NCBI GenBank assembly: GCA_028023455.1
Contig: JAQFVV010000004.1
Span: 17,980,001-18,044,000 of the forward strand
From: Epiperipatus broadwayi
Lineage: Eukaryota; Animalia; Onychophora
Direction of reading: 5' to 3'
DNA: 64,000 nt
A program made the position numbers and the translations under genes. Positions 1,208 to 32,926 of this stretch are shown here, in pieces. Numbering within the stretch: the first letter of the stretch is position 1; each line of letters starts with the position of its first letter. The notes under the pieces were generated by a model. The model worked only from the letters and a program-made list of their open reading frames with translations. It had not been told where the DNA came from and ran no database searches.

Positions 1208-2869
1208 GACAAACATTGGGATACAAAAATAATAAATTTAAATTAGATTTAATAATTTTTATTAGTCATTCATTAGACTAGAGATTATCCAATAATAAAA
1301 AATATTTCTGTAGTGGAATTTTTCATTACACCACTTTCATACAAGGTTTCCTCTTGTTTCTTTAAATTTAATAGTATTGTTTACAAGTATTGCAAATATT
1401 AAAAAAAAAAAAAAAAAGATAGAGTAATAACTTAATTTACTGCTTTACACTATTATATAAAAGTTATATTTAAATTTGAATTCATTTACTTTAAATATCT
1501 ATGTAAGTGTGCATACCTTAAAACATTTTACAATAATTGTATCACTGTCATCTTTTTTTTCCCTATGCACAACTGATTGAAATTTCTTTCTATTGAGACA
1601 ATTCTTTGATGACAAATGCATTGAAAGTTGTGTTTAACTTTTTTCTAGAAACATTATTGCTAGTAAAATTTTGGTGGATTAGCTAAATGGTGGTATGTTT
1701 GTAAAAAAATTTCCATATGGTTTCTGTTTTCTAAAAAAAGAAATTTTTTTTAGTTGACAGAATAATAATCAATTTTAAATTTTAATAATTAAATGCTTAA
1801 CTAGCAAGTTTAACTTTCTAGTTCCAGACAGAATTACAAAATTCACTTTTAAAATAAAAATGAAAATTTAACCATTTTTCTTCATCTCTAATTACATGAC
1901 TATCTCAATATTTCTATTTTCCTATTAATTTTTTTTTTTGGTAATTGTTCAATTTTAATACAAAGAAAAAAATTATCAGTTTTTTGGCTATACAACAAAA
2001 CAGAAATTATGTGGCATTGCTTCATTTTTTATTATAAATATACTGTATTAAAAAAAAAAAAGTAATAAATAAGCAAATGAAAAATTTGGTTTTACAATAT
2101 TAAGTAGCATGTTTTATAATTAAACAATCTATATATTTATATAAATAAATAAAAATTTTACTATCATTTTTAATTGTAAAATTCACATCAATTTTAATTT
2201 TTGAATAATGTAATCCTATCAACTTTGTTCATATTATATAATAAATCCATATATATATATCAGTATATTCTAAATATAAGAAAATAATTTAATATATTCA
2301 TAACTGTGTGTCACAAAATAATATACTCCTAAAATGTTAAAAACTTTCTATTACATATATATAACTATTAGTAATGGTAATATACAATTATAAAATATCA
2401 GAAAGTTCCAGTTACTTTAATAACCTTTATCAACTGTTAATTTTTTTTTTAATTTGGCCAAAATAAACTTCATCATGTAATATCCCAAAATTCATCAATT
2501 TTAATATTTGTACTTTGCATAATTAGAAAAATTAAGAAACCCAATTTTTATAAATAAATAAAAAAAATTTAATTAATAAGTAAAATACAAATATTAAAAA
2601 TCATGAATCCAGATATTATTTGATGGCATATGCTTTCAATAAATTTAAAATATTTTAATACTTGATAATGAATGTAAAACTAACTGAAAGTACTTCTGAA
2701 ATTGCTATATTATTAACATTCATCATTATTTAATATACATATATTATAATTGTCGAGAATTTGTGGACAAAGAGAAATTTGTAGCCACTTCTATGTTTAA
2801 GAGCACAATGCAAGTCAAAATGCTTATCATGAATGACCCACTTCTCAATTACACTAGCCATTATAAGTA

Positions 2870-4830
2870 TAGATATACAAAGCAAAAGATAAAATCAGGA
2901 AGGATTCAGAATATCTTATACTGACAGAAAACAAAACAATCAATAAGAACAAAAATAAATAAACAAAAACCTAATGTGAGCATTGAAGACCCTTCTCTTG
3001 TGGTTTGCTTTGGGACTTAAATATATATATATAATTAGGATTTCTTTAATAGTAATTAATATTTACTGAGGCTATAACCTCGATAATATGCGTGTAAAAT
3101 GCGATAGTAGGGATCTCTACAGGTGTTTTAACCACAAGCTTACGCTATGGAAGAAAAGAGGGGAACCCCTTCTTTACTTCAACCTACTTTCTATTTAAAT
3201 AGGTGAAGCTGAAGCGGTTAGATCTGCGAGCGTGAAGCTATTCAATACTTCACTGATTAAGTCCACATTTCTTATTACACATTAATACTCGCGAAATCTT
3301 TCGATTTACGAGTCAATGGAAAGATTTTATAGTTAGAAATCTATTAAAGTAATTTAAAGTTGTAATTATAAATTTATTAAACGCACATTGATTACGTAAG
3401 TAATATTTACTGAGTCCCTACTATCGCATTTTACACGCATATTATCGAGGTTATAGCCTCAGTAAATATTACTTACGTAATCAATGTGCGTTTAATAAAT
3501 TTATAATTACAACTTTAAATTACTTTAATAGTAATTGCATATTTATACTATATTTTCAGTAAATAAATAAGAATTTGTTAAAATAAATGGTGACTAGAAT
3601 CTATACATCACTGTGCTCACAATCATTCATCTGCCTGTAAAATAATAATTAGTAGTGCCTGTTTAGCAATAACGCACATTATATCAAACTTACATCATAA
3701 GCAATTTCATGAATGCTTACTTTTCTCATATAGCTTGCAATGGTTTATATGCATTTTAGCTATGAATCCAGGCAGAACTCTTGAATGACTTCTTTAAAAC
3801 AGTACAACTAACAATAATTTTAGTTAAATTTACATGTGCAGAAATTACCTCTTCACTATTCTATATAATATTTACTTGTCATTCTAGTTAAATTCTAATG
3901 CCTTAAAAGAAAATTCATATCAACATCAATTCACAGAGATCTTATAAAAAAAAAAAAATTTGTTTCTAGCTGTCCTTCAAAATTAATTGATTCTATTTAT
4001 TTAAAATGTGGCTAATACATGGCATTATTATCATATAAATATGATAGCTAGTTTGTTCAAATGTAAACAATATCTGATATAATCACATATCTATTTAACT
4101 TATCATAAAAGTGATGATAAATCTAATATACAAAGCACGAGATAAAACCAAGAATAACTCAGAATATCTTATACTGACAGATATATATATATAAAACAGT
4201 ATATAAAACAAAACAATCAATAATAACAAAAATAAAAAAACAAAAAGTAATGTGGGCATTGAAGTTCCTTCTCTAGTGGTTTGCTTTGAGACTTAAATGT
4301 ATATATAATTAAGATTTCTTTAATAAAATTGCATATTTACATTATATCTTCAGTAAATAAATAGAAATTTGTTGAAATAAATTGTGGCTAGAAGCTGTAT
4401 ATCACCACACACATGTTCATTCATCTGATTGTAAAATAATAATTAGTAATGACTGTGTAGCAATAATGAACATTATATCAAACTTACATCATAAGCAATC
4501 TCATAAATGTTTACTTTTCTCATATAGCGTGCACTGATTTGACGATATGCCTTTTAGCTATGAATCCAGGCAGAACTATTGAATGACTTCCTTAAAACAA
4601 TACAAATACAATTTTAGTTAAATTTACACATGCAGAAATGCTCTCCTCATTATTTCATATATTAGTCATTCTAGTTAAATTCTAATGCCTTAAGAGGAAA
4701 TGCATGCGAACATCAATTTACTGAGATCTTTAAAAAAAATGTTTCTAATTGTCCTTCATGATTCTATTTATTTAAAATGTGGTTAATATGTGGATTATTA
4801 TCATATAAATATGATATCTAGTTTTTCAAG
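2870..4830 (+). repeat. Two diverged tandem copies of a ~0.7-0.8 kb repeat (about 2870-4065 and 4130-4830); the first carries insertion A
   Basis: Collinear blocks, e.g. agaatatcttatactgacaga, aacaatcaataa, gtggtttgcttt, ttatatcaaacttacatcataagcaat, gctatgaatccaggcagaact, ttctagttaaattctaatgcctta. Confidence 0.9.
3057..3531 (-). mobile_element. Element A: non-coding structured fold-back insertion, 344-bp unit plus perfect 74-bp hairpin
   Basis: 3341-3414 is the exact reverse complement of 3458-3531 (43-nt loop). 3057-3113 is the exact reverse complement of 3415-3471. taatatttactgag recurs at a 344-bp period. ctttaatagtaatt is duplicated at 3044-3057 and 3523-3536. The insertion is absent from the paralogous site near 4313-4338. 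Confidence 0.9.
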
Positions 4831-4879
4831 TATTTCTATTTAACTTATAGTAAAAGTCAAGGTTGCTATTGTCCTATAT

Positions 4880-5882
4880 CAGGGGTGGTGAACTTCCAGC
4901 CCATGGCCAAGTCCAGCACTTGAAAGCTCTCAATCAGGTCCATGACTTTTTCAAAAAGTGCACAAAATGACCCTGTATTTAAACAATTGATCTAAAATAA
5001 AATATTTGTCATTTTCTCACATCTTTTTCTCTCTCCAACTTTTATAATAATTCTAATTTATTTTATCAGAGGTGCAATATTCCAACAAATCATCTATATG
5101 GGGTGGGGGTCTACCTGACTATGGGTTTAATTTATGACACTAAGGGCATTTTATTTGTTTTTATAATGATTTTTGCAAGTGAATGTATACTAGCAAAATA
5201 AAACTCAATTTTTTTGTTTTATTATTTTTATTTTGCATTTAATTTTTTTTATTAGGATGGTTACACCAATAAGACAAAAAAAAAAAAATTGACATTGAAA
5301 ATCATGCATTTGAAAAGAAATGGATCAAAACTTTTTTTTTTATAGAGAGAAATAGTAAATTGATGTGTCTGATATGTCTGAAAAGTATTTCAGTTAATAA
5401 AGAGCATAATATTAAGAGGTACCATTTATCAAAACAGTCTAATTTCAATAAAATTGTTTTTGTGAATTACTTCAACCAAAGTACAAATAAATCAGAAAAT
5501 TCTATGAAAGCAAGTTACATTCTTTTAAAAAGAAAAAAGCAGAAAATTTAATTTTCTGAAAGGGAGTTTATCCTAGAAGTTATAGAATTAATATGACCAG
5601 AATATAAAACAAAATTCAAGAATATAAATATGTCACAGGCTAGTTACAACACACAATGAACAAATTATCATTAAATGTGGAAGTCAATAATAATAATATT
5701 ACTTTATTTTTAATTAACAAAAAAAAAATATGGCCCTTGGCCCACTCCTAATGATTAGGGATAAATTAATTAAATTTTTCATCAAATATAGCAGGTTAAT
5801 TTTTAAGTCAATAATTTTGTATGGCCCGAGAATATTATAAACATCCAAATGGTCCTTGGTAGAAAAAAAATTGCCCACCCTG
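4880..5882 (+). mobile_element. Internally deleted hAT DNA transposon (GTF2IRD2/SPIN/Charlie-like transposase N-terminal remnant)
   Basis: TIRs caggggtggtgaa / ttgcccaccctg; near-TSD gtcctata / gtcctaca; translation near 5300-5450 ENHAFEKKW..FFFIERNSKLMCLICLKSISVNKEHNIKRYH. Confidence 0.85.
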
Positions 5883-6359
5883 GTCCTACATGAAGAAGAC
5901 AAACAGTTATTAAATGTAAATATTAAACATTTGCTCTCAGATTATTATACAAAAAATATAGTAAAGAAATGACAGCTAAATAAATTTCTTACAAATTGAA
6001 AATCTGTTTAGTTTCATGATAGAAATAATTATTTTATTTTTGGAATAAGATCCCCTTTTATATATGTGTGTTTCAATATTTTGTAAAATATAAAAAAAAA
6101 AATTTTTAATATTTCAATTGCATCCATTATATTTATGTTTATCCACATTTCCTCAGAAATAAATAAAAAATTACATCAGGAAACATGCATATGCTTATAA
6201 ATTAATTAATTTTAAAAATAAGTATTTTGCTATATACAACAAATTTATATATGACAATAGATATGCCTCAACATTCCCATAACATTTAGTAGACTAAAAT
6301 TATGGATGTATTTTTCTGGTTTATTATTATTTCCTTGCATGCTTCTCAACATAAATACA

Positions 6360-6852
6360 TAATTATATCATATATATAAGTAAGCATTTATTTTTATAGC
6401 GTCTGCATATAATTGTAATTTACATTCATATCGGCCATTCATTTATTATTTAACACTCGCAAAGCGTTTGCACAATTGGTTTGAATGGCCGATATGAATG
6501 TAAATTACAATTATATGCAGACGCTATAAAAATAAATGCTTACTTATATATATGATTAAGTTTCAGTTGGAATGACGTTTAGTAAATTCTAGGAAATTTC
6601 ATCGCGTCATTCGTTCAGACATTGTATATGGTGATTTAAAAGTGACCGTTCTATCGTCACGCCTTCTGTGCAAGTACTTCAGATTTGCTCATATATAAAT
6701 ATTTGAGTCGTAGGAATAAGAGGATCCTTTTTATTCCTGCATAAATTCTATATCTTGTATTGATCAGAAGGCATTCATTTATTATTTAACACTCGCAAAG
6801 CGTTTGCACAATTGGTTTGAATGGCCGATATGAATGTAAATAATTATATCAT
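6360..6852 (+). mobile_element. Element B: non-coding structured fold-back insertion, 336-bp unit plus perfect 75-bp hairpin
   Basis: 6367-6441 is the exact reverse complement of 6482-6556 (40-nt loop). 6436-6505 is repeated identically at 6772-6841 (period 336). The 12-bp flank duplication taattatatcat lies at 6360-6371 and 6841-6852. Confidence 0.9.
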
Positions 6853-7099
6853 GTAAATCTTAAATATCTAATTATATTCTGACATAAGAATTAAATCTCA
6901 ATGATAATTATGTGGTAGTAAATCAGCATTTCATTTACTTAAGTTGAAATCATAAATTAAACAATCTCAGAAAACATTACAAATCTTAACTTTTTTGGCA
7001 AATATCTTAAGTCTTTATAATACCGTTTATCAATATTCATAGAACTTTTCCATAATATAATAGTATTTGTTTTGAAAAATTTCCATTATTCTCAACATT

Positions 7100-7870
7100 C
7101 ATAAAAGTTTTATCAATGATAAAGCAACTCTCACTGTTTTTTGTCACCAGTCAAAAAGCTTGATATTAAATTTTGCTTGGGTTATTGAAAAGAATTAAAT
7201 GTAATCTTAGTTATTGAAAAAGGGACAATAATCAATAACATGTACAAAAAGTTTCTTTATAAAAACATATAATTTACAAATTAAAAATAAATCATAGATA
7301 TAATATAGAATAAAGGATTTAATTTCTTGTATTTTAGAATTTCACATGACCATCATTTCTTATGCTTGCTTATACGTATAGAGTTTTGCCCGTTTTAATT
7401 TTAGAATTTACAAATTATACCAAAGGACCATCTACGAGACTTGAGAAATGTTGTAGTTAGTTAAAATATCATGAAAAAATTTGATGTCAGTATTGGTCAT
7501 TGATTCTGCCAATAATATATTTTCTAACATGTTTATAAATGAATTGATTTCCAATTCTCATCATGACTGAATTTTGGATTATATCATCACTGATAGATCA
7601 TTATATGTCATTCGAGTTTCAGTAGATATGTTCATTTAATCTTTTGTACCTAATTAGGCCATCCCTCATTTCATCAAATATAATTTTTCCAATTTTACTA
7701 ATTTAGTTAAAGCATTGAAATCAGATAAAGGGCCATCACATAATCTATCAAGTGACTTAGCCTTTATGAACTGACAAAACAATTTAATTTCAACTAGTCT
7801 AAGACCATTGTTTTGTTTTGTTTTCTTTGTTGGATGTTCTTTGAGACTTGTATGACAAAATTATTGATTG
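7100..7870 (-). mobile_element. Degenerate LINE remnant (APE endonuclease region, RTE-like)
   Basis: Broken minus-strand translation SLKEHP..NNGLRLVE...NQ..HIL resembles the LINE endonuclease C-terminal motifs. Confidence 0.45.
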
Positions 7871-8299
7871 TGATTGAAATTTAATCAGATTGAAAATTAA
7901 TAATTACCTGAAAAATTTATTAATTATAAATTTATTAATAATTAAACTGTTTTGGTCATCAAAGCATGGATTTCTTTCTGTTGATATCTATCATGAAAAG
8001 ATGTGTCTCCTGATAAAAGTGATTCAGATATTATCAAACTTTTTTAATCTCCATAGTCTTATGCCATCCAGTATAAGCTTTAGTAATCAAATAAATGCCA
8101 GAGAGTTCTTAATAAATCATTATCGAGTGCTGTCTATCCAAATACCCTCAGACTAGTTTCTAATATGTTATGAAAGTGTTTTTTAAACATATATACAACC
8201 AAATTTTATGAAGTGACTATTTTAAAGAAAAATTTATTTGTTAGCTTACTAATGATTTTGTTTTCTTCCATCTAAAGATGATTATCTTAATTCCTCTTT

Positions 8300-9250
8300 C
8301 TTTGAGTAAAAAAAAAAAAAACATTAACTTTTATTCCAAAAACAACTACTAAACATTAGATGCATTATTGTTTCTTCCTGTCCTATTTTTCTCTTCATTT
8401 TATTAATTTCTCCTACTCTGGCATTATGTAGTTCTTGCCTCTAATGATAAGCATACTTTGGTTGTTACCTTTCAATACTCCAAAATAAACTTTAATATAG
8501 ATTAGAAATTTTTCAAATTTCTACTGACTGTAATTAGTGATTAATTTTAACTATAATATTGCCATATAAAGAAGTATATTTGCATATTTAAACTTGGATA
8601 TTCATTATAATATAAGAGCTGTCTATTGTAACTATTGGTCCTATTTTTTATGTTTCAAACATAATAACATTGCTTGCTTCTCTAGAATAGAATTTATATT
8701 TCAGGCTTATAACAATCAAATAAATCCTTTTTGTGGACAGGTTCAGAATATATCAATAAGCCAGTACAATCTTCTACTTTTGGTCAATCTTTGTTGCTTT
8801 TTGCCTCCACCTATTTTTTCTTCTTCTAGATCTATATTATTCTCTAGAAATCTCAGTATTGTTTAATATCTACTAACATATTGACAATTTTTTATCTCAT
8901 TTCATCTAAATAATTGCATACTTATGTCTACTTTATTTTCTAAAAACTAATTATCATTCGTCTCTTTTAAATATGTTTGAATTTTCTAAATTCCTTACAA
9001 CTTAAATAATTTTTCTTCAAATGCATTACTTATTTCTTTTTGCATTTCCTCTAAACATTTTCTACTATATTATTTAAATTATTTGTTTTTATATTTTGAT
9101 CATTCTATAAATCCTCTTTCTCTCCTAAAAGTTTCTAAACAAACTGATATTTTCCCTAAATCATCTTGTATATCTTTTTCCTCTGTAATTGTTTGCTGAT
9201 CATTATATGTTCTAATGCTGCATGAGCAAACCATTTTAGTTGCGAGTTAC
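8300..9250 (-). mobile_element. Degenerate LINE reverse transcriptase remnant
   Basis: Fragmentary matches on the minus strand to GxYQxGFRxxRG and FVDxxKAF-type RT motifs; many stops and frameshifts. Confidence 0.45.
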
Positions 9251-9639
9251 TTTTTCATGGAATGCATGTCATTATCACCTACTTTCATATGTGCAGTCAA
9301 GGAGAGTTTGGGGTTCAATGTTGTCCCAAAAGACCAGTGTGAATACAAATTTTTGTAATACAATTCACATAAAAATATACAAAATTTTATGTGTCTAGAA
9401 AATTTTAGAGAAGTGATCCTAAGAAAAAAATCTGGCTATGTCAAAGTCTAGGATCCTTTCATATTTTTCAAAAATATGATTCCAAATACAAAATCAAATA
9501 AAATTAAATTAGTGTGATATTTGTTTTTGTCTGTTTGTTGTTGTGCATCTTAACTGTTTTTGTAGATTTTCAACCGTTAATAAAGTAAATTTCAATCTTG
9601 AAAAAAAATGTTTCATATAAATGGAATCAAAGGCACTTA

Positions 9640-11080
9640 CAATTTTTTAAAATGATATAGTTTCCAGATGTGATGTGTTATAAAAATTTATTTTTGATGT
9701 ATTGTACTTTAAATTTATAAATTCCACTTAACAAGTTTTCAAGAGTTGTGTGAATGCAAATGGAAAAGAAAATATTACAAATATTTTGTCATATTTTTTT
9801 TAAATGTAAGAAATGACCATCAAATGCAGATAATAGTCTTTTTATTACATTAGAATATTTTGATAAATTCTTATCTCTATTGAAATTATTTAACAAATGG
9901 AAATGTATTTCTAAGATGATTTTCAAATACCAATAATTTTTTGCGAACTACATTTATACAATTGCAAGCACCAATTATTAATTATAGTTCCCTTGCAACT
10001 CTTTATTGAGTTGATTGAAGTTTTTCAGTTGGATCTACTAAAAAACACAGATATGAAAACCAATCATTTCTTAATTCAGTTATTCTTGGTCATGAATGTA
10101 TCAACTTCTTCCCATAAGTCAAAAAATCATTTCAAACCTGTTCCTTGATTTAGCTAACATTTGTAAAATATATTATATTGTCATGTTTTGAATCTAATTT
10201 ACTAAGGAATTCCTTAAATTATCGATGCTGAAATACATATGATTGAATGTAATTGACTGTTTTTGTAATAATATTCATATATTTGTGCACATAAATTTTG
10301 CTCATGTATCAAGCACTGAATAATACATTACTGTTTTTAATGGCCTTTGACTCCAGAATATCATGAGTAATATTACAGCTCCCTTATTTTTAATGATGAC
10401 AGCTAGTACTCCATCTAGTATTATGTCTGAAAGTGTTTTGAAATTAAAGTTATTTTCTGTAAGACAATTTTCAATTGACTGGAAAATATCTTCTCCCTCC
10501 TCTAATAGTATCTTTCAAATTTAAAAGATTTAACATTTGTTCAGTTACATAAAACAATCATTTACACTACAAAAAAATATCACAAGTTGAGTCTCTCATT
10601 GAATGCCAGAGTATAAGCTTTGAAATTCTATATTTGATCTCATAAACATAAGTTGAATTTCAGCTGCAATGTCATTAGCATGATGACATATGGTTTGACA
10701 TGACAAACTGATACTTGAAAAAATCTTTTCATTTTCTAGCAAAACATCTTTTACAACTGTTTCTAAACACATTTCAATAGTTCACCATTTGAAAATGACT
10801 TCACTTTTTTTTACAAGCAATACACTAGCTGAATAATTTAATATCACAATATTGGATAGTTGTTGTTCTTATATTGAATGCCATTTGCTGAGACTTTAGC
10901 TGCAATTTAAATGTAGTTAGTTTAAATTTTTTCACTTCTTTATTGAAATTTACATATTCAGCATATTCATATTGTATTCCTTAATATGGTTGCTATTTTG
11001 ACATGAAGAAGTAATCTTCCTGATGATCGCTGTATTGTCTGCTTTCATTTTTCCTTTGAACTCATTCTGAAAGACTTAAA
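9640..11080 (-). mobile_element. hAT transposase pseudogene (GTF2IRD2-like)
   Basis: Minus-strand fragments FSNGELLKMCLETVVKDV, SISLSCQTICHHANDIA, LAFNE and GEDIFQSIENCL..LDGVLAVIIKNKG match the hAT DDE domain order. Confidence 0.75.
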
Positions 11081-11649
11081 TAATTAATTTATGAATATTT
11101 CATACATATTGATAGATACAAATTAAAATAATTAAATTTTATTGCTAAATGCATGTATAAATAAAATTTATTAAAATTAATAGTAAGTCTATGAAAACTT
11201 ACCTCTAAAAACTTTTACTACAATTTTCACGAATCAGATATTTATGTTTGTTAACCAAATTTAATTTTAGTTTTATATTCTCAAATAAAAATGTATTTGC
11301 TTTACCTTATTCTTATTCAGATGAATTTGACAATTATTTTTCAAATAAACAATTCAAATATCACATTTACTTACTATTGCATTTAATATACAAAACACAA
11401 ATTTTACGTATCTTGTTATTTTGTGCAGTAAACAATTTTTTATTATATTCGCTTAATATGCCTGCTCACTTACAACAAGAGGGAAAAAGCATAAATTGAA
11501 TGAAAAAAATTATTTTGATGCATAAGTATCCAGAAGCCGTAAAAATTAAATGTGCTGGGCAAGCTTGCAGATTGGCCAGATCTATTTTAGCATGACACAG
11601 CAGTTTTGAGCTTCCAAACTATTAATCAGATGATTTTACTTCTTTATCT

Positions 11650-12900
11650 GTATTTTCAGATTTCTTTCTATTTTCTTTATCCCTTTCTATTAGCTTCAAC
11701 TTCATTCTATACTTCATTTCCTAAAATAATTTCAAAATAAACTTCAGTTCCAATATGAACTTTACTTTGTTCTAGAGGATCACTATTCTTTTTATTTATT
11801 TCTATTATATCCATTTCAATTTTAGATTCTTCTATTTTAATCTTTAATTTGTACTTGACATTAGCTTTTGAATTAAATTCTTCAATAGTTCCTGTATCTC
11901 CAGCAGTTTCAAATTTTCTATCACTATTATTTCTATTCTACTTTTCTCACATTTTATAAACCAATTTTAAGACAAATTTTCATTCTAACCCTAACTGTAT
12001 TTTGTTCTACAAGATCTATACTTTCTTTAAATTGTTTTATATTGTCAACAAAGATTTCTACAATATTTAAGTTAATTCTAGATTACTCTAAATAAATTGG
12101 AAATCTGTTTTCCACCATTTGATGTTTCCAGACTCATAGCTTGGTATTACGTTATTTTATTTTTAAACTTTTTATTATTTTCTTTTTCCATCTGGTTTTG
12201 ACTTGTTACCATTCTATCCCCAAATTTTTGCTATCCCTTTTTCTTTATATCTACTAAGATATGATATCTTCTTTCTATCACTTATTGGTTTCTGCTTAAT
12301 ATAATCTTGTCATTTATAATAGACTACTATCTAATGAAATTCAGTTGACATCCATTTTGGCTTCTAATCATTGCTAGTTGGCTTCTAACCACCTAAATAT
12401 TTGTGTAATTTTATTCATCTGTAATATTGTTATTGATATTATCCTTATTCAGTTAATTGCATCATTACTTTATAATTGCTCTTGTCTTCAACTCTTTTCT
12501 CCCATCTTAAAATTTTTAATGAACTATCTCTTCCTCTAAAAGCTTAATATTTTACAAAACAAGTTGGTCTTTCCCACTTTAATTTTTCCTAATACTGCTT
12601 TATCTATAATTGACAAGTTGATATTAAATTATTTACCTATAATTTATTAGATTCTCCTGTTATAAAGTTTATCTCATGGCAAGGTTTTCTATTTCATCTC
12701 ATTGGGATATGGATGTATTTCACCATGCTTTCCCTTTTGGATTTCATATTCACCAATTCTATTTTCAGGATTTATTTTTACAACTTAAAGTTGGATAAGC
12801 TGTTGAAGTTCTTTCAAAACATATTCTCCTGAAAACATAAATTTCTGATGCACTATATCTAGTATATATTTCCAAACACAATCTGGTGATATTTCTGGTT
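11650..12900 (-). mobile_element. Degenerate LINE reverse transcriptase remnant
   Basis: Purine-rich minus strand with broken RT motifs (VGKDQ-like, GIRQGC-like). Confidence 0.45.
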
Positions 12901-13609
12901 ATTCACCTACATTTTCATATAACAGAAAACCAGAAATTCAATAACCCTAAGTAAATACAAATATAGTAAAATAAAAACACTTGGAAAATTTAAAAAAATT
13001 ACATCTACGGTGCAGCACAATTGTATGTTGCCACGAAGTGCATATTGATAAAAACAGGCATAGAGCATCTCATATCTTATCTGGATTCATACTTATTTTC
13101 TAATGCAAGCATAAGATGAGAAACAGTACACATGACTATCTTGGATCTTTTAGCCTAATAATCCTTTACAGACCCATGCACTTAAAAACACACCCACAAA
13201 CATTTCATCTTACACTTCAAAAAAGAATCTTTGAAAAAAAACAGCACCTATCAACTCTCAAACAACATAACTAATATCAATAAAGACTAGCCCATAATTT
13301 AAAAGAATGGATTAAACATTGGGATCAATACATTTTTTTAAATTAATAGATCTTCCTAATCTCATGCATATAGATTTATCATGCCTCACATTTTATCTTC
13401 CAGGGATATATCTTTATAGTACCCAATAGGTGATATTTTTATGTAATTGTCAAAAAATGTGTGGGCAACTAAGAACTTATAACCATTTCTAAATTTATGA
13501 TCACAAGGTAAATAAGGATGATAATCATGAATGATATCATGCATACACAGATTCAACACTTATTCTACTGTTACACTAACTCCTACAATAAACACACCAG
13601 ATGTACAGA

Positions 13610-14290
13610 GCATGTGATAAAATCAGAATTGATTGAGGGTATCTTCTACTGATATATATAAAATAAGATTAACAATAAAAGCAAGTATGGAGGCAATATT
13701 AATGAATTAACATACTTTTAATTCAATTTTCACAGATAAACTCTAAAATAAAATAAAACAATCAATAACAACAAAAATAAATATCTGATGTGAGCAAGAA
13801 AGTTCCTTCCATAATAAATCTTTTCACATTTGCTTTGGATTTAAAAGAAAACATATAAGTAAATAAATAAAAATTTGTTTAAATGGATTATGGCTAGAAT
13901 TTATTCTTCACCATTCATGTTCATTCAACATCTACAAGTCATTTACTTGTAATACTTGTGCAGCAATAACACACATTTGAACAAACATCACAATGATTTC
14001 TCATAGAAGTTTGCTGATATGTATTTTACATATGATCTTTTTTAAATAAATACTAATAATAACATTAATCTTATTTAAATTTATACAAGTAAAGAAAACT
14101 CAATACAATTTTACATAATATTAACTTTTGTAATTCAAATAAAATTTTAACCCCTAGACATCAATTCGCAAACATTTTATAAAAGACAATCCTTTGTTTA
14201 TAACTGTCCTTCATGTCAAATATAACTAAAATTTAGTTATTTAAATGGGGCTACCATATGACATTATTGCATCATATAAACATAATATCC
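13610..14290 (+). repeat. Third, more diverged copy of the 2870-4830 repeat unit
   Basis: Shared blocks aaaacaatcaataacaacaaaaata, agtaaataaataaaaatttg, gcagcaataacacacatt, taactgtccttcatg. Confidence 0.75.
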
Positions 14291-14679
14291 AGATCTTCAG
14301 GCTTATAAAGTATTTAATATAATAACATCTCTAACTTGTAACAGAATTCAGCATTTCTACCTTCCTAAAACATACAATTATTAATATAACCATTCCCTTG
14401 AATTATTATAAAAAAATAATTAGAGCTAAACATATTTCTTATTAAAATCTGCCCAGTTTCATAATAGATATATATTTTATTCTTGAAATATTGATATTTT
14501 ATTCCTTTTTGATATGTGGATGCCTTTTGATATTTACCGATCTATAAAAGAAAAATGTTTAATACTTCAGGTGCATCCATTACATTTATATTTAAGTAAA
14601 TGCAAAATCACATTAGCAAATATGCTTGTGTTTATAAATTATTATTTATGTCAAAGCTTAATATGCATTTATTTGCCTG

Positions 14680-14931
14680 GATGTGATAATATGTTGGACT
14701 ATTTCTATCATCTACCATTAAAGTTGGAAAAATCTAGAAAATTTTTACCTTTATTTAAACTTTTCAAATACAAACAACTGTTAGAAATAACAAACAAATA
14801 GTGTAATCTACTAACTTATATTGTTTATTTATGTATTATTACCAGCAGTTGATTGTATTTGAAAAGTTTAAATAAAATTTTAAATTTTCTAGATGGTAGA
14901 TGATGGAAATAGTTCAATATATTATCACATC
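14680..14931. repeat. Old ~250-bp imperfect fold-back (MITE-like)
   Basis: gatgtgataatatgttggactatttctatcatctacca pairs with tggtagatgatggaaatagttcaatatattatcacatc; the tctagaaaatt...cttttcaaataca...caactg inner arms also pair. Confidence 0.8.
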
Positions 14932-16057
14932 TTAATATACATCATTTAAACATGTGAATGCTTGATTAATTAAAATGCTTTTTAAATTTCATTTTGAAAA
15001 AATTATTGCCAGAATTGAATTTTTTTCTTTTAGTAAATAAAAAGTCAATAAACACAATGCAACAGTTTACAAAACGATCAATAAATTCACAATAAAAAAT
15101 ATAATACTTAAAAAATCTTGATACCATTTTAGCAACACCTTTTTTTTTTTGTTATCAAATGTATATTTTTTATCATTTAACCTTGTTTAAATCTGAAGGT
15201 TTTTTGTTTGTTTTTTTTTCAGACAAATGATGCTTCAACTGACATTGATTTCATGGTTAAGATGATTATTCCCTTGACTTAATAAAAAATATTTGGTCAT
15301 TGTATTAATGTAGACAAATAAATAGGACATAAAATCGTTTAGTTTGAAATTCTGGTAATGAGAGATTTGATCTCCCCTTTTCACAACTTTAACAGACCAT
15401 AATGATTTGAAATCATAAATTAAGAACTATAATTATCTTTTAATAGTAGACTATGAAAACAAAAATAATCTATTTTAAAGATGATTGCAAAACCTATATT
15501 CGTTTCTTTCTTTTTTTATCATTCAAGTCATCCAGAAATTTGCCATTTGAAGATCAATTATTATATAATAAAAACAAAGTTTATACTTTAATATTTTTTT
15601 CATTAAATAAAATTAAATATGACTTTCAAAGATATTTAATTATTGACATTTATCTATTTTATCTTATTACTAGAAAGCAAATAAATGTTTGATGTATATG
15701 TATTCCATACCATTTTTAATCCTTTTACAATCATGAATTTTTTTTAATAGTAAAAATAAAAATTATAATCTAATATGTTAAGAAAGTGTTACTTAGATAT
15801 ATAAGAAACCATGTTTGTGAAGTGATTATTTTTGAGAAAAATTAATCTGAGACTTGTTTTTCTTTTTCTTCCTTTTCTTCTCTCAATAATATAGCCACTT
15901 TGAGCTGTCTCAATATATACAACTTACACATACAAATTTATATATCTATAATAGTTAGAATACAATATCTGAATCTTATTAATTAACTGAATATTTTAAA
16001 TCAAATTCAATACTTTATATATATTATCCAAACTAATTTAATTTATATGATTTAAAT

Positions 16058-18120
16058 CAGGAATGTGCAAAAATTTGATTGTGGTCAGCCAATGAACCAC
16101 CAAGAAATTTTGGAGTGATCCCCAGAATTAAGAGAAGTTATTATAATTTTCAAAAATTAACAAAATATATTTTTATTAAATTCAAATTATCAAAATTTTC
16201 AAGCTTACTTGACAAAAAATAATAAGATTAATTTCTTTAAATATCTACTTTTATCTCTTTTTAAATATGTTTTGTTTGATAATATATCCAAAACTAATAA
16301 CTGTTGGGAAATTTACTCATATAATTTAGTTATTAATAAGCAGCATAATACAGATGCCACACATATGCTTGAAAGAAATCAATAGTACAACAGACTTTCA
16401 ATTTCTTGTCTCTTATTGTGACAATTGCAAAATTATTACTGCTAATGAAAAAAATATTTTTATCATCATAGAAGTAATATTTTAGTATATTTTATGAAAG
16501 ATATAATGTCTGCATCAAGTGCAATGACTATTTTAAAACAGAATGGAAAACGTACTTTTTCATCACAATGATTAAATCAAAATGTATTATATATGCCATA
16601 TAAGTATTGCCACTTCCGAAAAAAAAGGTAACACTGAAAGATATTTTAAAAGCATGCATTGAAATTATGATACAGATAAGCCTTTAAAAAGTGAACTATA
16701 CCAATAAAAATTAAAGGAATTTAAATTATAACTAACCCAGTCAACAGACATTTTATTAAACTCATATTTAAATCTCAGGCAGTAATCACATTCATTAAGT
16801 ATGTCAAGAGCAGTAAAACCGCAAAAGAAACTTTTTGCAGAGGAATAAGTCATATATGAAAGCAAGTGATTCATTATTTGATTCAAAAAATTATTTTCAC
16901 AATTAAAAATGTGCAAATTTGCTGCAGAACTCTCATATGTTGTAAATAAATTCTGAATTGTGATTTGGTTAAATGATTAACCGAAGATATCAGCAACTAT
17001 ATTACTTTTTCCTAGCTGTTTGATGAATCCATTAATATAAGTGCTATTTTTCAGGTTTGTATTCTTATAAAAATGTTTTTTAAGAACATAAGAATTAAAG
17101 TAAAATTATTAACAGTATTATCTTTAAAGGAAAAAAAAAAAATGAAATGAAAATGTTTACTGTGCTTTCAAAATATATATATTAAAAAAAAGTGATTTAT
17201 AATGTCACATTATGACAATGTGTATAAAAATTCCTCAACTCTATTTGAGCTTAGTCTTCAAAAAAAAAAATTTAGATTTCAATAAAATAAACAAATCTGA
17301 ATATATGGCATTATTACATCATGCAGATTCTTTTACAATGATTCAGAGATTCACTACAAAATGTAAAAAAAAAAGTTTTAAGTGAACAGCTAACATACAT
17401 AATGAACGTAGACACAATATTTAGGTAATGGATTTAATTTTTATTGAGAATATAATTAACTCTTAATGAATTAAACTTCCAATTGCTAGAAAAAAACAAA
17501 ACAATAGTTAAAATGATTGGATATATTAATACTTTTAAAAACAGTTTAAACTGTTGGATATTTTCCCAATTGATAAAAACAAAATAAAAATTTTTAAAAA
17601 CATTTCTGATAAATTCTCAACAATTGAAAATCATTCAATAAAGACAAATATATTAAGAGAAAATAATAATTCTTTACTCAGAATTTGAAAGACTTATCCA
17701 AGAATTTACCAGATTAATAAAATCAATTGTTATGTTCAAGTTTTATACATTTGGCATTGTTGATCTGAAAAATATCATTGAAAAAATAAATAATACATTT
17801 CTATGATGGAAAATGAATTTCTTCAAAATGACAAAAATTTAAAAGCTCATAGTTCAGGTCTTAACAATTACTTTTGAAATCTAATGTACAAAGAAAAGTT
17901 CCTAATTTTAAAAAAATTATATTTAATTTTTTTTTTTAACATTACCTACCTGTGTGTTTGTGTTGTCGATGATAAAATTGTTTCTGTCTCAAAAAATAAT
18001 TAAGAATCCTGTTCAGGGTTAGCAGTTAATACTTAAATATTAATATATTCAAAATTAGTGGACAGTAAACAGTGCACATCTTCTTCAACTACTTAATCAA
18101 TTTTCATGATTCCACTTTAA
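16058..18120 (+). mobile_element. hAT transposon remnant (GTF2IRD2/SPIN-like transposase pseudogene)
   Basis: TIR-like caggaatgtgcaaa at 16058; broken translation YFKTEWKTYFFITMIKSKCIICH.SIATSEKKGNTERYF, then DES and LQNDKNLKA-like motifs downstream. Right end not found. Confidence 0.7.
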
Positions 18121-18366
18121 ATATATATTTGAGAGTGAGTTGTTGTTTTTTTGATAATATATTTTGTTTGATTGTATGAGTAATGATTTTTATTTTTACA
18201 TTAAATAAATAGACAGTTGATTGCAAAATTTACAGAAAATGGAAATAATTTTTGGCCTAATCTGCCAGGATATAATTTAGATAATATATTTAATTTAAAA
18301 TATCCAATTAATTAATAACATATAAACGAGTATTTATATAGTTTATATATTTATATAAAAAGATAT

Positions 18367-18819
18367 TAATATTAGCGATTAAGCCAATGCACATGCACTT
18401 TAAAGATAAATTATAAATGGATACTCAATTTTTCCAGACACGAGATATAGTATTTTAGAAAGAATGGAATGGATCACCCATTCTTTCGACCCAAACATTT
18501 ATGTATGGGCAAATCTTAAGTGTATGGAAATAAGAGCGTGAAGGTGTTACACGACACTTGCGAAATCTTTACAATTTACGAACTGTCATTCTTTAGTTGA
18601 AATTAAACATAACAAATGTAATTTAAAGTGATCGTATAACACCTTCACGCTCTTATTTCCACACACTTAACAGTTGTCCATACATAAATGTTTGGGTCGA
18701 AAGAATGGGTGATTCATTCCATTCTTTCTAAAATACTATATCTCGTGTCTGGAAAAATTGAGTATTCATTTATAATTTATCTTTAAAGCGCATGTGCATT
18801 GGCTTAATAGCTAATATTA
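18367..18819. mobile_element. Element C: ~190-bp near-perfect inverted repeats around a ~75-bp core; homologous to A and B
   Basis: 18367-~18556 versus ~18628-18819 differ at about 9 positions by my count. The arms align with the B unit and the core aligns with the A/B terminal hairpin. Confidence 0.9.
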
Positions 18820-20055
18820 CTATTACATAAAAAACATAGCACTATATAAAATAATCTCATTATAAAAAGATATTCTAAAGTTTTTGTTATTATTTATAAT
18901 TTTAAGATTAAATTAAAAGTTTTGTGAGATATATAACCATTTTAATTTGTTAATGATACACACACATTATTAATAATAAATTTTAACATCCGTATTAAAA
19001 TTAAATTTGTAGTTATGATGAAAATTATGGATCAGTCAAAATAAAAGATAGAAATACTGGATTCAAGTACATAAAGAATGGATTTTTTTAAAGATTTTGA
19101 AATGCAAAAGATAATTAAAAGGTTTTAACATAATACTGCTATAAAGACATAAATATATGTTAAAGGAGTGTAAAAATAGTTAAGATTATTGAGAAAAAAT
19201 AAAAATTAGATAATGTTAAACTTTGAAAGAATGTAATTACCAAAAAAAAAGAGAGAAAGAGGGAAAATATAAGATTTTGTTTATATGTTTTAATAAGTAA
19301 AAAAAAACTCTAAATGAATAATAGTTTTAAAAGTATTATTTAAATGTAATGTAAAGTATTAATAATGAATTGTGAAGTGTAGATTTGAATAAAAAATATG
19401 TGATAAACTAGTAAACAATGAAAGTAAAAATTACAGTAACAGATAATAAAAACTAATTCACTTCAATATATATATGATGAACTAAAACATAAATTTAAGC
19501 TCAATATTAACTTTAACAATGGTAAATTCTGTATGCCAATAAAAAATAAAATTAAAATGATAACTAAAAATTTTTAAATAACAATACATTTTATAATTAA
19601 AATATAAAAGCAAAATAAAAAAAAAGCTTATGCCCTTTGAATTATAAGATTTTAAAAAAAAGTCAAATACAAGTGTCTAGAATGATTAAAAACATTGAAA
19701 TAATGATAATAAATACCCAGTAGAAAATAAGTATGGCCTTTCTAACTCAAAAAAAGGAAAAAAAAGAAAGAGAAAAAAATGCTCTAAATATGAGTTTTGC
19801 CATGACTGTACAAATCAATCTGTTAACCACAAATACTTCCATTAACCTTAACCCTAAATATAGAATATGCTGGTCAATTTTTCTGTTTATTTGATATTTT
19901 ATAATGTTTTCTTTTAATTTATTTAGCAAAAAATTTTATTTTCTGAAATATTTCAATATCAAGTTTAATTGTAGGTTTACAATGTATTCCATTTTCTGTC
20001 ATATCTTCCTGATAAAAACAATTGCCATTGCACATTTTTATGTCTTTTAAGATAA

Positions 20056-24860: not shown

Positions 24861-26985
24861 CTGAACTTATATTTATTAATAGAGGATGTTGCTGAAATAT
24901 TTTGACATCGTATGATGAGGAAATAGAGTGTAGTTCTAGAGAAGAATTAGAAACATATCTTAAATAATTATGTAATGGATATAGAAATGATATTAGATGT
25001 AAAGGATAGAGTGTTAAAAAATAAAAAAGCATATAGTAATAGAAATATTAGGTTTACAGAAAATTAATGAGGCAGAGAAGAAATTGAAAAGTGGAAAGCC
25101 TAAGAGGTTTAGATGGATGGGAAGCAGAGATGGTGATAAATTTATGAATTAGGGCAAAATTAAATCTATTATCATGTTTTAATAAGATGGCACAGAAGAG
25201 AGAATTTCCAGATAGCTGGAATAATACAGGAGTAAGACTACTATTTAAAGGAAAGGATAAGGGTCATAGCAAATTAAACAATTACAGACCTATAGTGTTA
25301 ACATCAGTGTTGTATGAAGTTTTTGCATATACGGTGACTGGAAGCATCACAAAATGAATGGAAGAAGATAATATAGTGGGAGAAATGGAAGGAGTTTTTC
25401 TATTGGATAGGCATTTAGGAGGTAGTAGTCAAACAATTTATAGATAAAGTAGACAATTATATATGGTCTTTATAGATATAGAGAAAGCATATGGTAGAGT
25501 AAATATAAATAGATTATGGATAAGTTTAATAAATTTGGGAATGGAGTTCTAGAGAATTTTATTAAGAGATTATACGAAAATAATTACATATCAATTAGGA
25601 AATATAGAATCAGTTAAAGTTAAAAATGGGGTTGGACTAAGGCAAAGATATCCTATATCATCTAATCTGTTTTTGTTATATTTGAGAGAAATGGAGAGAG
25701 CAATAGAAAGATTAATAGATGGCAATGGAGTATATACATTATCGGATCTTTTATTTACTGATGATATCTTGTGCATAGAAAGTAGGGAAGATATGGAAGT
25801 TATGCTGAAGATGTGCAAGTGTGGGTAAAAAGATTAAATTTAGTGAAGAAAAATCAAAAGTAATGAGAATAAATGCTGGGGAAAAAGAAGAGAAAGAATT
25901 TTTATTTTATTGGGGGATGTAAAGTTAAATGGGAACAATAGGTATAACTATTTGGGAATTGTCTTAAGTAATCAGAGAAATTACTTGGATGAATGGGAGA
26001 AAAAATTGAGAAATGAAGCAAAGAAAAGTAAGGGACTGATAAAGTAATTAACTGTTTTCATATAATAAATATGATGTAGCTAGAGTTGTATGGAAGGGAG
26101 TGGCAGTAGCAGGGTTAACTTATGGTAATGATGGGTTTTGTGTTAGTAAAGTAGTAAGACATGCATTAGTCGCAGATGTATGGATGGCAAAGGAGACAAT
26201 TCAAGGAGAAATGAAGTTTTTATATGAGAGATGCAAAAAGCAAAATGAAAATGTTTGGTTGGGTTATGAGTAAATGACAGGCAACAAGATGGGTGAGAGA
26301 GGTTATGGTATGCAGAATATTTGAATAAAATCTTTATGTCAGTAAACTTATACAAAAGATGGGATGATTGTGTTAGTAGAACTGTTGAGTGTTATAGTGA
26401 CAACAAATGGGATAGAAAAATAAATGCATTAGTAAAAAATAGGGAGTTGAAGAGATGGAGAACTAGTATGGAGTGTAAAAAGAGTTTAAATATATAAAGA
26501 AGTAAACAAAATATTGGGTGTGTTAATTTACAATAATAGTAAGGAAAGAAGTTTACTGTTTAAGGCTCGAACAGGATTGTTAGCAACAAGGTAATATATA
26601 TATATATAAATGGAGAAATGTGGGTGATTTAGTCTACAAGTTATGTAAGGAAGGCATGGAAAATACTGGCATCTGCTAATTAAATGTAAATGCTTACAAG
26701 CAGAAAGGGTACAAATAATGAAGTTGTGGGAGAATAAATATAAACAAAGTGATTGCACAGAAAATGGGAATTTGGTTTTTATGATAGGTTTGTGAAAAGA
26801 TAGGGAGGATTTAGATATAAAGGCCATAGAGTTGACAAAGATTATGTTATGGAAATATGATAAAACAGGATAGAGAAGAATGTGGGAAAAACGGAAATGG
26901 AATGGGAGCCGTGGAGCAGTATCTTCAGATTTTGAGAAAATTATATCGATAGCAATTCCACCTCTCTTAAAAAAAAAAAAAAATG
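24860..26985 (+). mobile_element. Second LINE RT fragment inserted into the RTE element, ending in poly(A)
   Basis: Motifs FPDSWN, NYRPIVLTSVLY, FIDIEKAY, GLRQ, FTDDI and YLG occur in order, with an A-run at about 26969-26982. The host RTE frame (CEQY / NLSL..HTLKF) resumes on the other side. Confidence 0.75.
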
Positions 26986-26989
26986 GAGT

Positions 26990-28080
26990 CAAAAAAATTT
27001 GAGCTTGCCTCCACATACTTTAAAATTTTTAGGTAGAATTATTTAAAACCAGCAAATTGAAAAAAATACTAGATAATCATTTTTAGATTTATGGGAGTAT
27101 GAAGGAAGCAATTTTCAGCCTTTAAATACTGATTGAGAAATTCTTGAGAATAAGGAATAATGATTTTAAGTTGAATAGAAAAAGCATGTGATAATGCAAA
27201 CTGAAATATAATGTCCAGAATATTAAAAAATATGACAGTAGATTTTATAGATATATGACTAATATATCTAAATGAGAATCAAACATTATTGGAAGATAGA
27301 ATGATGATACTAAAAGAAAAGGTATAAGACAAGGTTGTGGTCTATCATCTTTGCTTTTTAATACTTATATTGAAAAAGTCATAAAAGAATTTAGTAGTAA
27401 AATAAAGGGGAGGGAGGTAGTGGCTTGAAAATAAATGGCAAATTATTTAGTAGATACACTTTGTGGATAATATGATTTTTAATAGAAGGAATGATACTGA
27501 TCTACAGCTGATGTTAAAGAAACCTGATGAATCGGTTTTAAAAAAAGTGCAATGTAAAAATTAATAGAGAAAAAACAAAACTGATGAAATGTTCCAGAGA
27601 ATGAAAACAGGTGGATAAAAGTAGAGATAAATATTAGAATTGCAAAAGCCAAAAGAGCTTTCAACAAGAAATGTGGATTATTAAATAAAAATTATATCCT
27701 TATATTAAAAAAAAACACTTCATCAAAAGCTATATTTAGAGTGTAACCTAATATGTGTCTGAAACATGAAAAAACAATGCTTAGTTGTTTAAAAAACAAA
27801 TTAACAGCCTTTGAGATGTAATATTAGCTCTCATGATGAAAATAACATGAATAGCCAGGGTGAAAAATAAGAAAGTTCTGATTGGAAAGGATAATAGTAT
27901 TTTGGTGATCATCATTCAAAGAAGAAACAGTATGTTTAGTCAATTGATGACACATTCAGAATAATCTATTGTTGGAGAGAAGACCACTAAGGGGAAGGCT
28001 TAAGATAAAATATATGAGGGTAGATAGGGTGAATAGTATTCATGGAAAGAAGGCTGAAAACCTATGAGTTGAAGAAAGAA
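26990..28080 (+). mobile_element. RTE-clade LINE, 3' part (RT), degenerate
   Basis: KGIRQGCGLSSLLFNTYIEKVIKEF and FVDNMI motifs; RIAKAKRAFNKK; GRL-like 3' end. Confidence 0.8.
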
Positions 28081-28579
28081 GAGAAAAATCATTAATAAAA
28101 ATAATTATTATCCTTGTCTTTTTATAATTAAAGATATATTAACATTTTTCACTTTAGGTATGGATATATATATATAGCTTATTTAGGTAATATAAATCAT
28201 AAATTATACACTATAAAGTAAAATTTGTACCGCCTAAATTTCTGCCATATATTATGGCCATTATTACGGGATTACAATCTTCTATGAGGAAAAGCAAAAA
28301 AATTATATAACATGAAAAAAACAACAAGTTATTACAAATTCTGAATATAATAAGGTAAAGAAAAAGATAAAACAGAATGTAAGCTTTAAAAAATACGCAT
28401 TTTATAATTATTGAAAAGGCTTCACATGAATAAAGTGAATGAATTTAATAGGAAAAATATCTATTAAATAAATATATATATATTGAAACAGTTATGTGTG
28501 TCATGGCATACAACAACATAGTGGTGTGTGTGTGTGCACATATATATAAAATAAAATGTCTGCTAATATTAATAATACA

Positions 28580-32856: not shown

Positions 32857-32926
32857 TTTCTTTATGTGTCAAAACATCAGTCGGGAAACGAACCCTAGCT
32901 GTACTAACCACTCAGCCACCAATGCA
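32857..32926 (-). mobile_element. Short tRNA-derived SINE copy inserted in Gypsy RT
   Basis: Minus strand gcattggtggctgagtggttag (A box) ... gggttcgtttccc (B box) gactgatgttttgacacataaagaaaa; TSD catcctttt at 32848-32856 and 32927-32935. Confidence 0.85.

Follow-up and report, generated by a model that had tools for sequence, protein, structure and literature searches.

Probable Penelope-type insertions without a hammerhead: a large superfamily of retrozyme-like elements with a conserved folded RNA domain in the onychophoran Epiperipatus broadwayi

Animal retrozymes are defined by the hammerhead. To our knowledge, the RNA features that Penelope-like reverse transcriptases (RTs) need in cis are still largely unknown. 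Insertions of Penelope-like elements (PLEs) are strongly 5'-truncated and form partial tandems, the pseudo-long terminal repeats (pseudo-LTRs); a 5'-truncated copy lies inverted at their 5' end, and only one end bears a tail of 30-40 bp (Craig et al. 2021, PMC8557442), and the non-autonomous derivatives of Naiad/Chlamys PLEs form multicopy head-to-tail insertions (PMC8557442). The purified PLE protein of Anolis cleaves and extends both DNA strands and starts reverse transcription at two adjacent template-internal sites, the sequence between them being the tail; it uses unprocessed multimeric RNA, and hammerhead cleavage is dispensable in vitro (Frangieh et al. 2024, PMC11167929). For vertebrate retrozymes, derivation from the pseudo-LTR of PLEs has been proposed (10.64898/2026.07.22.740005). 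Here we describe three non-coding elements, designated A, B and C, found in a 64,000-nt stretch of the Epiperipatus broadwayi genome (assembly GCA_028023455.1, contig JAQFVV010000004.1, positions 17,980,001 to 18,044,000; hereafter the window, in which all coordinates are given unless a locus is named). They are separate recent insertions from three subfamilies within a single, very large superfamily, and very probably represent PLE-type retro-insertions, short, non-coding and non-autonomous, that are mobilised in trans by a PLE RT/GIY-YIG endonuclease.

The window is very AT-rich (G+C content of ~25%) and belongs to an animal-type genome of 5.6 Gb in 18,588 contigs. Mechanical repeat finding recovered all three elements, whose structure exceeds by far what chance would give. 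Each was inserted as a discrete piece and is flanked by an exact target-site duplication (TSD) of 13-14 bp. Element A (3058-3522, insert of 465 bp) has a direct period of 344 nt, whose unit occupies 3052-3395 and recurs from 3396, and an inverted piece spanning 3415-3531. Element B (6372-6839, 468 bp) has a period of 336 nt (unit 6436-6771) and continues for 69 nt into a second unit (to ~6840); its inverted piece (6367-6441, 75 nt) is 100% complementary, and its arms share 6 nt of junction microhomology. The arms of element C (18368-18860, 493 bp) are complementary over 192 nt at 95%. Both periods equal the unit lengths that had been proposed for A and B in a first-pass annotation of the window, and units measure 330-344 nt across A, B and C. 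The end of C, previously placed at 18823, had to be corrected to 18860, because the 37 nt that had been missed (18824-18860) proved to be the 3' tail of the family when the full C unit was used as query. The parts of the three insertions are as follows, with start sites 1 and 2 denoting the two RT start sites of each family.

3044-3057, no strand: left TSD of A, 14 bp, CTTTAATAGTAATT, identical to 3523-3536
3058-3414, minus strand: minus-sense arm of A, 1.04 units; its 3' end at 3058 is start site 1, unit position ~339
3415-3522, plus strand: plus-sense head-to-head arm of A, 5'-truncated at unit position 283
3477-3522, plus strand: tail of A, unit positions 1-46, the end of the plus arm being start site 2
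3523-3536, no strand: right TSD of A, CTTTAATAGTAATT, exact copy of the left
6359-6371, no strand: left TSD of B, 13 bp, ATAATTATATCAT, identical to 6840-6852
6372-6441, minus strand: minus-sense arm of B with tail, unit positions 116 to 47, terminating at start site 2
6436-6839, plus strand: plus-sense arm of B, 1.2 units; ends at start site 1, unit position ~68
6840-6852, no strand: right TSD of B, ATAATTATATCAT, exact copy of the left
18354-18367, no strand: left TSD of C, 14 bp, TATAAAAAGATATT, identical to 18861-18874
18368-18611, minus strand: minus-sense arm of C, truncated at its 5' end and internally deleted when compared with the 330-nt unit of the family; terminates at start site 1
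18605-18860, plus strand: plus-sense arm of C, from unit position 111; ends with the tail
18824-18860, plus strand: tail of C (start site 2); 18824-18864 matches unit positions 1-43 at 93%
18861-18874, no strand: right TSD of C, TATAAAAAGATATT, exact copy of the left

A paralogous empty site for A is present at 4297-4340, where the target occurs as a single copy in a duplicate of the flank (~85% identical). The flank is part of a segmental duplication of the same ~85% identity, which comprises 2758-4022 (copy 1) and 4126-4793 (copy 2). Since copy 1 carries A and copy 2 is empty, A was inserted after the duplication.

In order to survey the superfamily, the genome was searched with each unit (1,528 first-look candidates for B, 3,345 for A and 2,946 for C), and the units were mapped onto 90 fetched loci, representing ~70 independent insertions of the A, B and C families. 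Scored genome copies of A and B are 97-100% identical, and those of C ~92-98% identical to their own 330-nt family unit, which agrees with the earlier proposal that subfamilies already diverged have been active recently. Two arms are found in 46 of the 69 surveyed insertions, and their order is always the same, a minus arm followed by a plus arm with the 3' ends facing outward; the plan first proposed from the window, a unit or more plus a head-to-head inverted partial copy, thus holds for A, B, C and two-thirds of the genome insertions. The other insertions consist of a single arm, whose 5' start varies and whose 3' ends coincide with those of the two-armed ones. Arms range from 0.13 to 8.3 units in length, and the inner junction may fall at essentially any unit position. 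The outer ends, on the other hand, belong to two fixed classes that lie 36-46 nt apart in each family: unit positions ~339-344 or ~33-46 of the next unit in A, ~68-73 or ~112-121 in B, and 330 or 41-46 in C. Position 70 of B is aligned with position 0 of C, and the start sites are therefore homologous. Exactly one end of each class occurs in 42 of the 45 informative two-armed insertions (B, 14/14; C, 17/19, with the window copy included; A, 11/12). The TSDs of the three families have a mode of 13 bp (range 10-17).

The 5' ends of the arms are distributed differently in each family. For A, 24 of 42 arm 5' ends (loci L031-L060) are located between unit positions 272 and 320, immediately on the 3' side of the structured domain described below. 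The arms come in discrete lengths of n + 0.15-0.25 units (0.13-0.22, 1.08-1.29, 2.14-2.21). This pattern suggests either a defined 5' end of the transcript or stalling of the RT at the base of the domain. The 5' ends cluster at unit positions 1-48 in family C and inside the structured domain in family B; considered together, the clusters look more like the outcome of RT stalling at stable structure or of family-specific transcript starts. A snap-back (hairpin-copying) origin of the junctions was considered and dropped, as the circular distances between arm 5' ends look uniform (mean ~78, maximum 168). Sequence variants within B arrays are mostly private (66 private versus 12 shared). Such variants fit arrays that were born homogeneous, the sample being too small to part rolling-circle from homogeneous multimeric templates.

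A, B and C share with PLE insertions the 5'-truncated partial tandems, the head-to-head inverted copy and the one-sided tail. Their origin can be pictured accordingly as a short series of steps. The template is an RNA longer than one unit, as is evident from arms of up to 8 units, and the endonuclease makes a staggered cut with ~13 bp between the nicks, the distance recorded in the TSDs. Both DNA ends then prime cDNA at either of the two fixed internal template sites, as the 42 insertions with one end of each class indicate; the enzymology of this priming is modelled on that of the Anolis PLE. The two cDNAs run toward the 5' end of the RNA for variable distances, leaving the variable junctions, and are presumably joined head to head. 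Because every feature of the insertions is part of the described PLE integration footprint, neither a self-cleaving motif nor a circular template is required. The earlier interpretation of A, B and C as reverse-transcribed copies of a circular or multimeric RNA is retained as to a template longer than the unit, for which a circle is not needed, and the designation 'new family' was overstated, the elements being a hammerhead-less branch of a known kind of element.

The best-conserved part of the units is a structured domain of ~130 nt that precedes the RT start sites by 70-200 nt, roughly at the position of the hammerhead in canonical PLEs and retrozymes. On the sense strand, i.e. the strand that is reverse transcribed, it consists of a hairpin H4 followed by stems P1, P2 and P3, which enclose a three-way junction with hairpins H2 and H1. 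In the window its components are the following, listed with a further hairpin of A at 3288-3314.

3111-3255, minus strand: structured domain of A, with H4 GTGAAG/CTTCAC, TCACGC, CTTCAG, H2 CTTCACCTA/TAGGTTGAAG and the purine/pyrimidine hairpin H1
3288-3314, minus strand: hairpin ACTCG-TAAATC-GAAA-GATTT-CGCGAGT of A, ~85-110 nt downstream of start site 1
6642-6772, plus strand: structured domain of B, minimum free energy -44.3 kcal/mol, z -6.1, with covariation
6642-6660, plus strand: H4 of B
6661-6668/6765-6772, plus strand: closing stem P1 of B
6671-6677/6757-6762, plus strand: P2 of B
6681-6684/6752-6755, plus strand: P3 of B, AGAT/ATCT
6687-6708, plus strand: H2 of B
6710-6740, plus strand: H1 of B
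6741-6751, plus strand: conserved single strand J3 of B
~18418-18560, minus arm: second structured domain of C, inverted
18624-18770, plus strand: structured domain of C, with H4, TCACGC, CTTAAC/CTTAAG, H2 GTCCA-GCCCA/TGGGT, H1 AAAGAATGG/CCATTCTTT and closing stems

A strict pattern derived from this domain, GTGA-N8-20-TCACGC-N12-17-CTTMAG, has 13,816 matches in the genome, compared with 9 for the reversed control. A looser pattern for the 3' side has 53,181 matches versus 17,236 for its control, suggesting roughly 36,000 domain copies; the superfamily would accordingly comprise around 14,000-36,000 copies of the domain in the 5.6-Gb genome. The first 100 pattern matches listed fall into at least 12 subfamilies. 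Among the matches listed, H4 reads GTGAC/GTCAC, GTGAAG/CTTCAC, GTGAG/CTCAC, GTGAA/TTCAC, GTGAAT/ATTCAC, GTGAGA/TCTCAC or GTGACTA/TAGTCAC, and H2 reads GCTCA/TGAGT, GCCCA/TGGGT, GCTTG/CAAGT, GCTTA/TAAGT, GCCTA/TAGGT or ACCTA/TAGGT, with a conserved G.U pair at its base. The two sides of P1, paired by matching copy coordinates between two pattern listings, are GCCTTCTG/CAGAAGGC, GCCTTCTG/CAGAGGGT, GCCTTCG/CGAAGGT, GCTTTCCTT/GAGGAAAGT, GCTTTCATT/AATGAAAGT and GCTCTCTT/AAGAGAGT, while P2 occurs as CAA-TAC/GTA-TTG, CCAGTAC/GTATTGG, ACAACTAC/GTGGTTGT and ACAC/GTGT. Compensatory changes in H4, H2, P1 and P2 are thus spread over at least 8-12 subfamilies.

Folded singly, B, C and the B-like copy of locus L047 give one common architecture, H4 followed by P1-P2-P3 around the three-way junction with H2 and H1. 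RNAalifold, applied to a MAFFT alignment of six lineages including A and an A-like copy, predicts P2, P3, H2 and H1; 14 of the 28 pairs in the consensus have changes on both sides. Paired cells amount to 91.6% in this alignment, compared with 78.5 +/- 1.9% after shuffling (0/500 as high) and 39-56% when the partners are slid. On the sense strand the domain of B folds with -44.3 kcal/mol versus -32.4 on the antisense strand (z -6.1 vs -3.5), and that of the B-like family of L047 with -38.3 versus -23.6 kcal/mol; the difference is weak in A (-44.0 vs -42.8 kcal/mol) and absent in C. The single strand J3 (AWAAAKWCUWU) is conserved, but is missing in A.

These results bear on several structural claims of the first-pass annotation. 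Its view that stems are kept while their sequence changes is borne out for H4, H2, H1 and the long closing stem, all of which show compensatory changes, and the long-range closing stem it had drawn in B is well supported in B and the relatives of B. The closing stem it had assigned to A (AGATC/GATCT) is a GATC palindrome and was not recovered in the consensus fold. The terminal hairpin of A does have the counterpart GAATGACG...CGTCATTC in B and C, as had been claimed, but the GAAA tetraloop is specific to A. Folding on one strand as a sign of RNA-level selection applies to B, to the B-like family and weakly to A, but not to C; conserved G.U pairs are seen. Covarying stems and RNA-level selection are confirmed, beyond what three sequences could show, and the domain is maintained at the level of RNA.

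The homology of the three elements is of unequal clarity. B and C are 70% identical along the whole unit (591 nt of dimers, E 8e-48), the identity being 77-80% in the structured domain and 33-70% elsewhere. BLAST gave no significant match between A and B, and a match of 26 nt only between A and C. The short A-C matches are collinear and equally far from the RT start sites, with the hairpin at ~75-110, TCACGC at ~150-166 and CTTMAG at ~172-187. In addition, an old copy in locus L065 has the P3 stem of the B/C type (AGAT/ATCT) in spite of 67.6% identity to A over 225 nt, and intermediate subfamilies combine the A-type H4 (GTGAAG/CTTCAC) and an A-like H1 with the B/C-type CTTCAGA-YTGGC. The first-pass proposal that all three are homologous is therefore plain by sequence for B and C, but holds for A only as a distant relationship, via collinear motifs, shared fold and intermediates, on which basis we accept A as a distant member of the B/C superfamily.

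As to what the domain does, we incline towards a cis-acting module for copying or recognition. Its most likely role would be in the recognition or loading of a ribonucleoprotein, in RNA stability or in correct folding of the template, rather than in self-cleavage. Of the two functions suggested in the first pass, a self-cleaving and an RT-recruiting motif, it is the latter that we favour, with the domain as a putative recognition element.

The obvious rival is that the domain would be a new or diverged self-cleaving ribozyme, possibly protein-assisted, whose monomers would circularise and serve as rolling-circle templates for the RT. The domain occupies roughly the place of the hammerhead and is the best-conserved part of the unit, all of its helices covary, some junction nucleotides are conserved, and the mostly private variants within arrays fit rolling-circle copying. 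Family C even reads CUUAAGA...CGAAAG, one mismatch from the hammerhead strands, but these letters are lost in A and in B, the youngest and most active family, which has CUUCAGA...CGUAGG. Furthermore, the junction strands measure 2, 1 and ~11 nt, compared with 7, 3 and 1 in the hammerhead, J3 is absent from A, and the 5' ends of the insertions do not share a homologous cluster site across the families, unlike what a fixed cleavage site would give. Among the ribozymes of Rfam 15, none matched the A, B or C units at the gathering score or at E<=10 in a scan of the window and of arrays of the three families, although HDV (hepatitis delta virus)-like folds are hard to detect by Rfam covariance models; the only matches at A, B and C are spurious ones to plant microRNA-like families, on the head-to-head junction hairpins. 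The first-pass statement that the units possess no known ribozyme core can be upheld for the Rfam classes (hammerhead, twister, twister-sister, pistol, hatchet, hairpin, HDV-like and VS), and CUGANGA occurs on neither strand of the units. Two hammerhead near-misses detected by regular expression (CTGATTA in A and CTTAAGA in C) were rejected, as they are not conserved among the families. Finally, RNA cleavage is unnecessary for PLE integration (PMC11167929), and for that reason we regard self-cleavage by the domain as unlikely; the more specific idea that H4, P1-P2-P3 and the H2/H1 junction would form a new class of self-cleaving RNA that replaces the hammerhead and yields ~335-nt circles appears to us distinctly improbable.

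We likewise give little credence to the conserved block being mainly a signal at the level of DNA or transcription, such as an internal promoter of the RNA polymerase III (Pol III) type as in short interspersed elements (SINEs), with only incidental hairpins. Some subfamilies do read GGGTTCGAAAAG / GGGTCGAAAG, near box B (GGTTCGANNCC), with AGTGA ~60 nt upstream, and the 5' ends of family A cluster within 50 nt, which is what a defined start of transcription would produce. The box-B-like letters are, however, present only in some subfamilies and not kept in the most active families (B has GAGTCGTAGG and a sister family GAGTTGTAGG), and no tRNA or other Pol III RNA matches the units, as the head of a SINE with its A and B boxes would. 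The 5' cluster of family A lies outside the domain and is not matched at the homologous place in B and C, and the compensatory changes, conserved G.U pairs and strand-asymmetric folding all point to RNA structure. Still further from the data are elements formed at the DNA level, that is, foldback transposons or miniature inverted-repeat transposable elements (MITEs), Helitron-like rolling-circle products or satellite arrays grown by unequal crossing-over. Inverted arms, tandem units and fixed outer ends look superficially foldback-like, and Rfam scores the junction hairpins as plant microRNA-like inverted repeats. However, the arms are unequal and 5'-truncated at random unit positions, the ends are asymmetric with a one-sided tail of 36-46 nt, many insertions have a single orientation with 5' truncation only, and there is no transposase-type terminal signature; moreover, each array is a discrete TSD-flanked insertion at its own locus, with units 97-100% identical. 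The DNA-level reading, to which we give almost no weight, is already contradicted by the anatomy of the insertions.

Potential donors of the enzymatic machinery are abundant. A search of the genome for the GIY-YIG domain gave more than 10,240 candidates, 150 of them over the Pfam cut-off, with open frames of up to 901 aa, and the copies are arranged in 3.1-kb tandems and in close minus/plus (head-to-head) pairs. Short 5'-truncated arm pairs that still contain the endonuclease would imply its C-terminal position and thereby the canonical PLE clades. The A, B and C units are devoid of open reading frames (ORFs). At 63285-64000, where the window cuts it off, lies a further element, E, whose units of 455 nt are arranged head to head as in A, B and C. 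Its minimal hammerhead core, CTGATGAAGGCCACAAGCCAGAAAC, at 63457-63481 on the minus strand (CTGATGA-AGGCCACAAGCC-AGAAAC), was missed by Rfam. Of the two hammerhead-bearing elements, D and E, to which the architecture of A, B and C had originally been likened, E is thus verified in both core and plan, but D was not located. In locus L046 (1917-3000) a GIY-YIG-like ORF is followed on its own strand by a sequence similar to E (79% over 406 nt) that includes the hammerhead, and family E therefore looks like a derivative of the pseudo-LTR of an autonomous PLE. A simple module swap between E and A/B/C was considered and rejected, as BLAST of family E against A, B and C found no similarity.

Fragments of GIY-YIG-like ORFs were also seen within 1.5 kb of the insertion in 3 of 28 A-family loci (L056:318-719, L032:2617-2994 and L046:1917-2258; ~0.15 expected from the density across the genome), one with a weak Pfam GIY-YIG match (E 0.0037, below the cut-off) and two recognised by eye only; this hints that members of the A family are prone to insert into or next to older copies of PLEs. 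Two Rfam matches were recorded outside the arrays: a Hammerhead_HH9-like one (34.5 bits, E 1e-5, below the gathering score) at L063:565-639, ~490 nt from a C-family array, and a tRNA (31.4 bits) at L001:2676-2747, ~430 nt from a B-family array.

Several points weigh against assigning A, B and C to the PLE machinery and a recognition role to their domain. The sole PLE 3' region read, that of L046, matches the hammerhead family E and not A, B or C. The RNA required by the Anolis PLE surrounds the start sites (PMC11167929), whereas the domain described here is upstream of them, so that a role in RT recognition is presumptive. The covariation statistics come from six sequences that are related and represent few independent lineages, and the same six served to derive the structure. 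With these points considered, mobilisation in trans by PLEs is still what we hold to be very likely.

The distribution of the families was also examined outside the assembly. Families A and B occur, at 85-99% likeness, in contigs from two organisms (three runs of ~100 Mb): across window 3000-6900 their summed word depths are in the thousands, the unique flanks being without coverage. The two families are therefore common to at least two related sampled organisms; the contig runs are uninformative on expression. Pattern scans of metagenome contig collections gave four GC-rich chance matches only, and scans of viral contig collections for the A/B/C-type pattern gave zero matches. Two other repeats of the window bear no relation to A, B and C. 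Remnants of an LTR retrotransposon occupy 26528-33551 on the minus strand and include an integrase core ORF (rve, E 7e-9) and an RT-RNase H ORF (E 5e-19). At 14680-14931 there is an element of ~250 bp, MITE- or foldback-like in look, that has terminal inverted repeats of 39 nt (92%) and, inside them, an inverted repeat of 69 nt.

The Penelope-type integration footprint thus persists without a recognisable ribozyme in a superfamily of tens of thousands of copies, many of them nearly identical. Its at least 12 subfamilies constitute a naturally 'mutagenised' set that keeps a ~130-nt fold by compensatory change, and the domain is a concrete candidate for an RNA module recognised by the PLE machinery or by the host; if it did cleave, it would represent a new ribozyme class. 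The two RT start sites mapped in each family could be used for target-primed reverse transcription in vitro. With respect to annotation, searches based on the hammerhead miss a large share of retrozyme-like repeats. The present analysis adds the motif counts of the superfamily, the covariation of the helices, RT start sites mapped in register for three families, a connection of A with B and C, a corrected end for C and the probable pseudo-LTR origin of family E.

A, B and C can be compared with several kinds of described elements. LINE (long interspersed element)-dependent SINEs, whose 3' stem-loops the partner RT recognises, are likewise non-autonomous and contain a conserved, structured stretch of RNA, presumably for recognition in trans; A, B and C differ from them in the lack of a tRNA, 7SL or 5S head (no match in the units) and of a 3' tail repeat, and in their internal RT initiation and multimeric and inverted insertion products. 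Naiad/Chlamys PLEs and MRC1 of Chlamydomonas (PMC8557442) resemble A, B and C in having tandem or inverted insertions and tails without a canonical hammerhead, but no microsatellite target bias was seen for A, B and C. With the canonical endonuclease-positive PLEs (Penelope/Poseidon, Neptune and Nematis; PMC8557442, PMC11167929) they share the 5' truncation, pseudo-LTR tandem, inverted copy, one-end tail, two fixed internal RT start sites and AT-rich targets, and differ in possessing neither ORF nor hammerhead and in a slightly longer tail (36-46 versus 30-40 bp). In build, A, B and C also resemble metazoan non-LTR retrozymes (Cervera & de la Pena 2020, PMC7229834; Li, Clavereau & Pollet 2026, 10.64898/2026.07.22.740005), which are also short (170-400 nt), AT-rich, non-coding tandem units, dispersed in thousands of copies as TSD-flanked insertions (TSDs of more than 4 bp, as in A, B and C) with a highly self-paired predicted RNA. 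Both coexist with PLEs, which are thought to be their mobilisers. Unlike these retrozymes, A, B and C have no type I hammerhead on either strand and possess a covariation-supported three-way-junction domain instead; they are a hammerhead-less, retrozyme-like variant of PLE-type elements, in which a conserved folded RNA domain stands in the hammerhead's stead.

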